Shown in pieces: positions 45,501 to 48,500 of a DNA stretch of 64,000 nucleotides (position 1 is the stretch's first letter; each line of letters opens with the position of its first letter). The DNA lies in assembly GCA_904063045.1 (NCBI GenBank), contig CAJFCJ010000013.1, positions 664,156-728,155 of the forward strand. The letters are read 5' to 3'. The position numbers and the translations under genes were made by a program. The stretch comes from Dimorphilus gyrociliatus (lineage: Eukaryota > Animalia > Annelida). Under the pieces are notes generated by a model that worked only from the letters and a program-made list of their open reading frames with translations, was not told the DNA's origin and did no database searches.

Positions 45501-48500
45501 TCTAATACACCTTCGGGAGCACCTTTAACGAACATCTTAGGTCCGGTACCTAATTTAGTTTGTTTAGTGGGGACGGCATAGCATGACATACTCTTTCTAT
45601 CTCTAGAGAACTCTAGAGTGAAATCTTTCTTCCATTGATTTAAAATTGAATGATTGACAGCAGTACCCAATTCTTTCTTTTTCATTCCGGATTTCTCAAC
45701 ATTGGCTACATTCATTTTTTCAACGAGTACAGTCAGGGCAGTTTCAGTGGCTTCTCCTACTTTTTCATAAACGCCTTTGGCTTCGTTATAATCTACCGAT
45801 GAATCATTGCACATAGCGCAGATGGTTGATAATTCAATCAGGCCATCGAACTCGCTGCAACGAACTGGCTTTCCACCTTGGTACCTGGAGAGAAAGAGAG
45901 AATGATTGAGAGAAATTACATCAGTTCGAATACATAAATAAAACGTGTGCAGTTAATAAATACATAAGGAATTTCTTTTTTATTAAAATACCTCTCCGAG
46001 AAAAAAATGAGGCAACATTCCGGAAAGTTCCTCTTTTACTTCTTTTTGTATACTTAATATATGCAAACACAATATTATATTGAGTTAAATACTCTTTTAT
46101 ATACTGTATATATATATATAAACAGTATATTTATAGCATATATCAAGCATATAGAAGTATTTAGCAGGGTTTGGTTAAACAGTTTACACTCTTTGTAAGT
46201 TTTAACTTGAAAATTTTTTAAACAGCAGACTGTCAAAACACAACACTTACACTTCACCCTCAGGGGCGTAAGTTGAACCAGTTATTTCGAACTGGTTTGT
46301 ACTGATTGCGCCTTCGGAAATTTTGTCAAAGATGAACATCTGACGGAATATTCAATAAGAAAAGTAGAAAATAATGACAGAATTTAGAGTTGTTACAATT
46401 CAAGGTGTTAGTTTTAGAATTGAAAATAAAGCGAGAGTATTAGATTTTTCCACGCTATGATTAGGGTAAAAAAACTGATAAACTGAACCAAAAATTGGTG
46501 AGACGCTTCCATCGATGGAGCGAAAGAAAGTTACTACGACCAGATTTTTTATTGCTTTTTTTTTGAAACTTACACGACGCCAACTGGTTCGTATGTTGTT
46601 CCGTCTACTTCAAATTCGTCGAAGATCGGTTTCTCTTCCGATGAATTCTTGTTCAGTGTTAAAACCTGTGGATATCAAATGGGGTTTATACTACAAAGTG
46701 GGGGCAGCATGCAATCTTGACGATTATTAGCTAAATGGAAATTGTAAATGTAATTTCTGCCAAAAACCTGCACAGCATTACCAGGTCAAGGTAGCGTATG
46801 GAGGTATTTATCATACCGGGTGCTATATGTTATTAACTTACCCGACAGACGGACATTTGATTAGTTGTTAAGGTACCAGTTTTGTCAGAGCAGATAACAG
46901 AAGTACAACCGAGCGTTTCTACAGAAGGTAGACTTCTAACAATTGCGTTCTTCTTAGCCATTCTTCTTGTTCCTAAAGCTAAGCAGGTAGTGATAACGGC
47001 GGGAAGGCCTTCCGGGATAGCAGCTACAGCCAAAGCAACAGCTATCTTGAAGTAATAAATAGCTCCCTTCATCCATGATCCGCCGTGAGCGGGATCGTTG
47101 AAATGTCCAATATTTATTGCCCATACTGCAACGCATACAATTGAAATAACCTTAGATAATTGTTGTCCGAATTCGTCGAGTTTCTGTTGCAATGGTGTTT
47201 TCTCTGCCTCAGTTTCGGTCATAGAAGTTCGAATTTTGCCTGCAAAAACAATGTTTCCGTTTTTATTTTCCCCTCCTTTTTTTTAACCAACCACCCGCCA
47301 AAAAGAAAGCATAACGCAAACGCGAAAGCAAATTGCAGAAAGATAAAAAATCAGCCTACATTTGTACGAAGAACTTTATTCTTGGCTCAGCGGCTCTGTT
47401 TACCCAAGTGCGCCGACCGTACAGTCGTTTTTTTGCGCGGAGGTTTATTTCTATACGTTCTATACTAGAAATACTGTCCTAGTTTTACTAGATTCAACGC
47501 TAAGCAGGTGCGCTGCTCTCTAAAAAAAACGGGAGCAGGGTAGATTGAAAAACTTGTAACAGAAAAAAGCGAAAAGCTTAAATGACGTATGTAACTAATA
47601 TACTTAATTTAAAAAAAACTACTCGAACTCTACTTTAGGTACAAAGCGGTCAGATGCTGCATTTTTTTTCAGCAAATCACCCCGCTAAGTTGAACTTTTC
47701 CCTACTCTTGATAAGAATCAAGCAAATTTAGCCTTTTCCTTTTTCACAAAAATTAAGTTGCATAACTTAAAAAAAATTTTTCACCTATTTCTGTATTCAA
47801 TCCAGTACCAACTACAATGCCTCTCGCTTTTCCAGCGGCAATGTTGGTTCCCTGAAAAAATAAACACCATTAAGGAGAAGATTAGAAGTAGACGGTAGAA
47901 ATGACCTTTCGACGCAAAAAAATTGTTTTAGTTTTTATCGAAAGCTATGCGCCTTTTCTAACATTAAATCTTGGAATTAAATATTATTATATAAATAAAT
48001 TATGTAAGCTTCTTAAAAAAAGATTAAAGATAGTTACCGAGAATAGAACATTTTTCTTGTCTTGATTTACAGCTCTTGGATCGGGTATAGAATCGGTGTG
48101 CTTAAGTACAGAAACCGATTCTCCTGTGAGGATAGCCTGATCGACTCTTAGAGTTGTTGAGAAGATCTTTGTTAGCCGAATATCAGAAGGTACTTTATCT
48201 CCGACTGAGACATCAACTATATCTCCAGGTACCAATTCACGAGCTTTAATCCTTTGAACTCCTCGATGATTTTTTCGAATAACCTTAGCTATCTCAGGTT
48301 CATATTCTTTCAAAGCTTCAATGGCGCTCTCTGCATTCCTTTCCTGTAAAAATTGTTGATTTAGTAATTCCACTACATCGATTTGCGAGGGTTACACTTC
48401 ATCGCATGATATTCACCTGCCATACTCCTACCACAGCATTCGCAATAAGAATAAGCAATATAACAAATGGTTCAACAAAAGCTGTAACTTGTTCTTCTGA

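Follow-up and report, generated by a model that had tools for sequence, protein, structure and literature searches.

A mutually exclusive exon pair just past the phosphorylation site of the single SERCA gene of the annelid Dimorphilus gyrociliatus

The annelid Dimorphilus gyrociliatus has one SERCA gene, and this gene carries a pair of alternative exons just past the sequence for the catalytic phosphorylation site. The gene lies on the minus strand of the stretch of DNA analyzed here, a window of 64,000 nucleotides (nt) (GenBank assembly GCA_904063045.1, contig CAJFCJ010000013.1, positions 664,156 to 728,155), and the pair, an upstream 92-nt exon (exon A) and a downstream 89-nt exon (exon B), shares a single place in the message, which we call exon 6: each mature RNA contains exon 5, then A or B, and then exon 7. 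We posit that the two exons form a functional, mutually exclusive pair, the product of an ancient tandem duplication of one exon within a single annelid SERCA gene, and we give this reading a probability of roughly 0.8. A sequence-only reading of the window had proposed such a pair on the strength of two homologous exons that follow exon 5 and run from phase 0 to phase 2; their coordinates, lengths, GTAAGT donors, and translations were all reproduced in our analysis.

The gene is compact and, when mapped whole with the protein P0130, extends from ~49472 to 43026. Its DKTGT phosphorylation motif is located in exon 5, and exon 7 is 84 to 87% identical to annelid-type SERCAs, including those of Capitella and Platynereis, a group of proteins that carry the Pfam domains E1-E2_ATPase, Cation_ATPase, Hydrolase, and Cation_ATPase_C (the closest match to exon 7, at 95% identity, is P0001, from a Logan contig). 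Judged from sequence, the DKTGT motif together with the SERCA-type domain set identifies the predicted product as a SERCA, i.e., a P-type IIA Ca2+-ATPase.

Exons A and B are both 3n+2 in length, start in phase 0, and lie between AG acceptors and GTAAGT donors. With a slash marking each boundary, exon 5 ends in ...TCTGTCGG/gtaagt at 46842, exon A reads cacag/GTTTTAAC...GGCGTCGT/gtaagt, exon B reads cgtcag/ATGTTCATC...GGTGAAGT/gtaagt, and exon 7 opens from 45884 as ctccag/GTACCAAGG. The 89-nt exon had been called canonical, and it does align end to end and without gaps with residues 366-394 of SERCA1a (rabbit and human) and SERCA2 (E = 1.7e-5). The 92-nt exon had been called highly diverged, which is again what we find: compared by itself with PDB sequences, exon A gives a chance match and no SERCA, and a tblastn search (E <= 1e-3) with the closest full-length SERCA does not recover it. 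The homology between the two exons covers their C-terminal halves (7 of 14 positions identical and 11 of 14 similar; E = 2e-5 in a single BLASTP comparison), with the common core F-[DE]-[IV]-x-G-[ST]-T-Y-x-P-x-G, and it is only via this homology and via A-type relatives that exon A can be equated with SERCA residues 366-394.

The RNA evidence consists of assembled Logan contigs from four public runs, placed on window positions 45400-47300: a coral metatranscriptome (X1), invertebrate metagenome RNA (X2), a marine metatranscriptome (X3), and a run whose kind is not on record (X20). The last of these is evidently RNA, given its spliced contigs and the essentially zero depth of the 5-A and B-7 introns. 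As contig depth gives no more than a rough idea of abundance, the depths below are only indicative. The 5-A joint (46665/46842) and the A-7 joint (46574/45884) occur in X1 (word depth 5.1) and X20 (1278 to 1592), the 5-B joint (46339/46842) occurs in X1 (word depth 9.6), and the B-7 joint (46251/45884) occurs in all four runs (X1, at 9.6, X2, X3, and X20). Thus, the junctions that had been named as a check on the pair (46842>46665, 46574>45884, and 46842>46339) are all present in RNA contigs. Both forms are seen whole in X1, where one contig runs from exon 7 through B to exon 5 (record 2, 147 nt) and another from exon 7 through A to exon 5 (record 4, 150 nt). X3 also holds both forms, to judge from two loose ends: one of 16 letters, at 46840, matches the first letters of exon A exactly in reverse complement, and one of 12 letters, past exon B, matches the last letters of exon 5. 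Neither an A-B joint nor a 5-7 (skipping) joint was found in the contigs of the four runs, and this pattern of joints, like the conservation described below, supports the proposal of mutual exclusivity.

The balance between the two forms is strongly different between samples. In the coral metatranscriptome, exon B is about twice as deep as exon A (9.6 and 5.1), with flanking exons at 10.8 to 13.5. In X20, the exon A contig has a depth of 1592 and the A-7 joint one of 1278, with flanking constitutive exons at 1479 to 1946, and the sole contig that contains exon B has a depth of 113, or ~7% of gene depth. Exon A, for all its divergence, predominates in X20 and is not a minor variant. The differing A:B ratios argue for regulated choice, and we posit that the choice would be set by tissue, stage, or condition. 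As an observation in its own right, the B-containing contig of X20 (record 9, 46248-46600) is joined to exon 7, continues through exon B and the entire A-B intron, and reaches into exon A; the A-B intron alone is retained (~7%), with the B-7 intron already removed and the neighboring introns without depth. This retained intron may be a detained intron or a dead-end by-product of the choice of exon A.

Could exon A instead be a decaying, unused duplicate, so that only exon B makes SERCA protein? The strong divergence of exon A, its failure to find a SERCA among PDB sequences, and its absence from the tblastn results are all what one would expect of a pseudo-exon. However, the 5-A and A-7 junctions are present in contigs of two independent studies, X3 adds a 5-A loose end, and the depth of exon A in X20 equals that of constitutive exons. 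In addition, the frame of exon A is open into exon 7, its splice sites are intact, and exons of the same GTTY type are expressed in other annelids. We regard the pseudo-exon explanation as refuted by the RNA contigs and its probability as close to nil.

What would keep the two exons apart? Frames were read through exons 5 to 7 for the positions of stop codons. Both the 5-A-7 and the 5-B-7 forms are open throughout, whereas the 5-A-B-7 form meets a stop 49 codons past exon 5, the form that skips both exons meets one after 16 codons, and the form that retains the A-B intron meets one after 31 codons. Since both exons are 3n+2, double inclusion or double skipping shifts the frame into an early stop. 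We posit that such transcripts would be removed by nonsense-mediated decay and that mutual exclusivity would be enforced mainly through this incompatibility of frames; given the length of the A-B intron (234 nt), steric exclusion need not be invoked. Frame incompatibility coupled to nonsense-mediated decay is the commonest arrangement among genes with mutually exclusive exons (MXEs) that are conserved between human and Drosophila (20 of 28, or 71%; PMC5740500). In total, homology, phase, length, splice sites, single use, and a frame barrier all place exons A and B among MXE pairs of the tandem-duplication kind.

The pair is also found outside Dimorphilus. Genomic loci of Capitella, Owenia, Helobdella, Lineus, Lingula, and Haliotis were searched with the exon peptides of the window, and the tandem pair is present at the same position in Capitella and Owenia, each with two 89-nt copies (Table 1). 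No second copy of exon 6 was found in either Helobdella paralogue, in Lineus (a nemertean), in Lingula (a brachiopod), or in Haliotis (a gastropod), and Lineus, Tubulanus, and Lingula show a single version of exon 6 across all listed RefSeq isoforms. The sequence-only reading would have fallen had the 92-nt exon never been spliced in and not been conserved; the exon is spliced into RNA, and the pair is kept in Capitella and Owenia. In all three annelid genomes with the pair, GTTY marks the upstream copy and GSTY the downstream one, and the single-copy outgroups all read GS(T/K)Y. Transcripts of other annelids tell a similar story. GTTY or GTTF occurs in six transcript-derived proteins that are closest to annelid SERCAs (P0141, which is Platynereis Atp2a, P0147, P0150, P0275, P0192, and P0216), and GTTY was found in no nonannelid in the protein set compared. 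Two of these proteins, P0150 and P0275, share the pattern ...KP...F[DE]..GTTYEPxGxV with exon A of the window. GSTY occurs in many annelid-type transcript proteins, including close relatives of A-type ones (P0131, at 93% to Capitella, and P0124, at 91 to 92% to P0150 and P0275). Across these sequences, A-type exons vary both in length (29 to 31 codons) and in sequence, and B-type exons are nearly invariant.

In the simplest reading, one duplication would have preceded the divergence of Owenia from the remaining annelids, the upstream copy would have evolved faster, and the pair would have been lost in leeches. Is it possible that the 89-nt exon is simply prone to duplication, and that the pairs of the Dimorphilus, Capitella, and Owenia lineages arose independently or were homogenized and diverged again? 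The two copies are still alike within Owenia and within Capitella, thirty residues hold little phylogenetic signal, and tandem copies of other SERCA exons (three copies in Owenia, and others in Capitella and Lingula) indicate that exon duplication is frequent in this gene. Yet the order, the intron phases, and the flanking exons are identical in the three genomes, the derived S-to-T change that gives GTTY is always in the upstream copy, and the downstream copies, like the single-copy outgroups, all keep GSTY. We consider repeated duplication improbable. Two observations on relatives without the pair may be added here. Helobdella robusta has two recently duplicated SERCA genes (loci L004 and L007), each with a single GSTY exon 6, and duplicated genes together with the lack of an exon pair fit gene duplication replacing exon swapping in leeches. 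In Lineus longissimus (L005, 17640-17831), exon 6 and the exon after it form a single fused exon that no intron interrupts.

Several points weigh against an old, functional, and regulated pair. Contigs show presence and not absence, so that rare forms with both exons or with neither could be missed. The X20 contigs include no mature 5-B junction, and exon B occurs in them only in RNA that retains the A-B intron. The word "regulated" is drawn from ratios between samples whose tissues and stages are not on record, and the proposed single origin is drawn from position and one shared S-to-T change within a segment of 30 residues. Finally, the AlphaFold model that we use below for the swapped segment, which is a model of the natural A-type relative P0150 built on an alignment of 56 sequences, is poor overall (predicted local distance difference test [pLDDT] score, 65; predicted template modeling score, 0.39), and we draw only on its local secondary structure and local confidence.

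Table 1. Positions of the exon pair, its surrounding features, and the corresponding exon copies in two other annelids
Feature	Sequence	Position	Strand	Remarks
Constitutive exon 5	Window	46842..47239	-	M4 and phosphorylation-site motif; ends in phase 0; start uncertain by ~2 nt; RNA contigs cover 46842-47241
Intron exon 5-exon A	Window	46666..46841	-	176 nt; joint 46665/46842 in X1 and X20; zero depth in RNA runs
TGCATG hexamer, candidate RBFOX-type site	Window	46708..46713	-	48 nt upstream of exon A
Exon A, upstream "GTTY" version	Window	46574..46665	-	92 nt, phase 0 to 2; 5-A-7 form in X1 record 4 and X20 contigs
Intron A-B	Window	46340..46573	-	234 nt; holds the CCATCGATGG palindrome; retained at ~7% of gene depth in X20
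Exon B, canonical "GSTY" version	Window	46251..46339	-	89 nt, phase 0 to 2; 5-B-7 form in X1 record 2 and X3 record 17
Intron exon B-exon 7	Window	45885..46250	-	366 nt; three blocks conserved against relative L001
Conserved block 1	Window	~46250-46220	-	directly past the exon B donor
Conserved block 2	Window	~46026-46001	-	TTTCCGGAATG...
Conserved block 3	Window	~45958-45917	-	ATTAACTGC.CACGTTTTATTTAT..TTCGAACT.ATGTA
Constitutive exon 7	Window	44459..45884	-	1426 nt; rest of N domain, P domain, M5-M7; needs 2 nt of the preceding exon
Exon 6 copies, Capitella teleta	L002	12808-12896 and 13116-13204		two 89-nt copies, AG/GT boundaries, same flanking exons
Exon 6 copies, Owenia fusiformis	L003	53414-53502 and 54132-54220		two 89-nt copies, AG/GT boundaries, same flanking exons

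What does the pair change in the pump? It swaps SERCA residues ~366-395, a stretch of the N domain made of its first beta-strand, a turn, and its second beta-strand, followed by the G(S/T)TYxPxG loop, and the swapped segment directly follows the DKTGT motif and the strand of the hinge between the P and N domains. In the P0150 model, whose local pLDDT is 70 to 85 over residues 361-400, a strand at 362-371 is continuous with the hinge strand and leads through a turn (372-376) to a second strand (377-383) and a loop (384-393) that contains G-T-T-Y-E-P-x-G. The A and B versions are least alike in three places: the first strand (VLTL in A, MFIF in B), the turn, and the loop (EPVGV in A, APEGE in B). 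Exon A also carries an acidic SSEE motif. From known SERCA structures, the swapped hairpin is expected next to the hinge, at the N-domain base, and on the surface, away from the residues known to contact ATP in SERCA1a. Just past the segment, residues 397-402 are the cytoplasmic phospholamban-interaction site of SERCA2. The most likely effect of the swap would be an altered movement of the N domain or an altered docking surface. In this scheme, swapping the hairpin would change either the kinetics of N-domain closure or the surface offered to partners, and one gene would thereby yield two pumps that are kinetically or regulatorily distinct.

Might the switch be real and yet neutral for the protein, with the two exons merely partitioning expression between them (subfunctionalization at the level of splicing control) and encoding pumps that behave alike? 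The presumed position of the hairpin away from the ATP-contacting residues of SERCA1a would allow this, and the variable length (29 to 31 codons) and sequence of A-type exons suggest weak constraint. Against neutrality, deep branches of the annelids have kept the pair, A-type exons share a conserved GTTYxPxG core, and the A:B ratios are strongly different between samples. We regard a protein-neutral switch as unlikely.

The introns were also considered as a source of the signals that would direct the choice. The hexamer TGCATG, a putative RBFOX-type site, does lie where the sequence-only reading had placed it (46713-46708); its distance from exon A is 48 nt and not the ~43 nt given there. One copy was found in a 957-nt interval in which 0.15 would be expected from base composition. 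Two copies lie downstream of exon B in Capitella (0.23 expected) and two, likewise downstream of exon B, in Owenia (0.56 expected); when the three Poisson tail probabilities are combined by Fisher's method in a hand calculation, p is ~0.01 to 0.02. The position of the hexamer is not conserved, being upstream of A in Dimorphilus versus downstream of B in Capitella and Owenia. RBFOX proteins act by a position rule established in vertebrates and flies, under which a site upstream of an exon represses it and a site downstream enhances it. Could RBFOX-type proteins, via (U)GCAUG, thus repress A from upstream here and enhance B from downstream elsewhere, with B as the form of muscle or neuron? The modest enrichment in the three genomes speaks for this, and under the usual rule both placements would favor B. 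On the other hand, the placement is not conserved, Dimorphilus gyrociliatus has a single hexamer, the site is putative, and the B-7 intron of the relative L001 (95%) holds no GCATG. We see control of this kind as a speculative and rather doubtful account of the choice.

Other candidate signals were rejected. The palindrome CCATCGATGG is indeed located in the A-B intron, as had been noted; palindromes of 10 nt are expected by chance about once per kb, and we reject it as a signal. Inverted repeats occur in the three introns, short and AT-rich, among them a stretch of 16 nt through which the 5-A intron could pair with the B-7 intron, and an intronic ACTTAC element is complementary to both donors. 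The 16-nt pairing and the ACTTAC element were considered as competing structures; neither is conserved in L001, and both are treated as chance in AT-rich DNA. L001 is a 3.3-kb Logan contig with 95% protein identity, is the sole close relative available for comparison, and covers the B-7 intron side and not the flanks of exon A. We found no convincing conserved competing RNA pairing of the docking/selector type, the repeats that could be checked being not conserved in L001. Against this same relative, the B-7 intron contains three conserved blocks (Table 1), the rest being diverged with indels (alignment A1); two of the three sit 40 to 130 nt ahead of exon 7. Within the third, TTCGAACTG is complementary to CAGTTCGAA of exon B (46294-46286).

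Exon 6 is not the only part of SERCA genes to occur in more than one copy. In the window itself, both versions of the M8 exon are visible (44293-44171 and 43940-43809). This pair, at M8 and the luminal loop, is in the same gene and is the same kind of event as the exon 6 pair, and both M8 types occur in annelid-type transcripts. Among annelid-type proteins, all eight A-type (GTTY) ones have M8a (two of these eight are gene models), and B-type ones have M8a in 10 cases and M8b in 5; coupling between the two choices was rejected as not significant (Fisher p = 0.12). In Owenia (L003), the exon after exon 6 has three tandem copies (56482-56598, 56895-56996, and 57183-57284), each after AG and before GT and each with the motif F.GGK.V....[FY]E.L.E[ML]ATI...CNDS..DYND. 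The annotated Owenia protein P0182 uses the third copy only, and the cluster is a candidate three-way exon swap in the N domain. In Capitella (L002), a piece of the linker between the A domain and M3 is present in two copies (11379-11474 and 11798-11872), which suggests another exon pair. In Lingula anatina (L006), the M4 exon is present in two copies (23951-24052 and 24544-24639), a candidate pair at a Ca2+-binding helix (M4 has the Ca2+-site motif IPEGLP).

To generalize, could annelid SERCA, and more widely spiralian SERCA, be a case of "one gene, many pumps," assembled from several exon-swap modules in the manner of myosin heavy chain? By this analogy, the exon 6 pair would be a hinge-tuning module that sets the kinetics of N-domain closure or the docking of regulators, with the fast-evolving A as the default pump and the conserved B as a specialized one, possibly of muscle or neuron and RBFOX dependent. 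We offer this as a tentative picture that is possible but on balance not probable.

SERCA ranks among the most thoroughly studied ion pumps. Its described isoform diversity comes from paralogous genes and alternative C-terminal tails (PMC3527596). An internal swap of the first N-domain hairpin, retained in evolution, amounts to a natural experiment on a little-noticed part of the pump beside the hinge, and a comparison of the A and B pumps could reveal if the hairpin sets ATP-dependent kinetics or partner binding. The pair also adds to the evidence that animals with a single SERCA gene diversify it by exon swapping and not by gene duplication, a pattern that the leeches fit.

How does the pair compare with known systems? 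No published description of internal SERCA exon swapping was found in the literature searched. The type of event is well known, and the case in the SERCA N domain appears to be undescribed. MXEs with incompatible frames (PMC5740500, PMC9741552, and PMC9013439) resemble it in having adjacent homologous exons of near-equal length and equal phase, one per mRNA, which cannot both be included without loss of the frame. Here the gene is another one and so is the site, and no conserved competing RNA structure was identified in the SERCA introns among the repeats that could be checked in L001. ATP2A/SERCA is not mentioned in the main text of PMC5740500 or PMC9741552. Among pumps, PMCA/mca-3 is listed with substitution of tandem-duplicated exons (PMC9741552); like SERCA, it is a P-type Ca2+ pump with a homologous exon swap, but it belongs to the type IIB family and not to IIA. 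In the clusters of MXEs of invertebrate muscle myosin heavy chain (PMC3912159), as in the SERCA gene, several swap modules lie in the motor or ATPase domain where vertebrates use paralogous genes; the protein is different, and the additional SERCA modules in other genomes are genomic duplicates identified by tblastn only. The nearest precedent by gene is SERCA splicing itself, described for vertebrate SERCA1a/b, 2a/b, and 3a-f and for Artemia and C. elegans (PMC3527596). There, too, one invertebrate gene yields tissue-specific isoforms by splicing; in contrast, the known events change the 3' end or the C-terminal tail, whereas the exon 6 pair swaps an internal segment of the N domain, residues 366-395.

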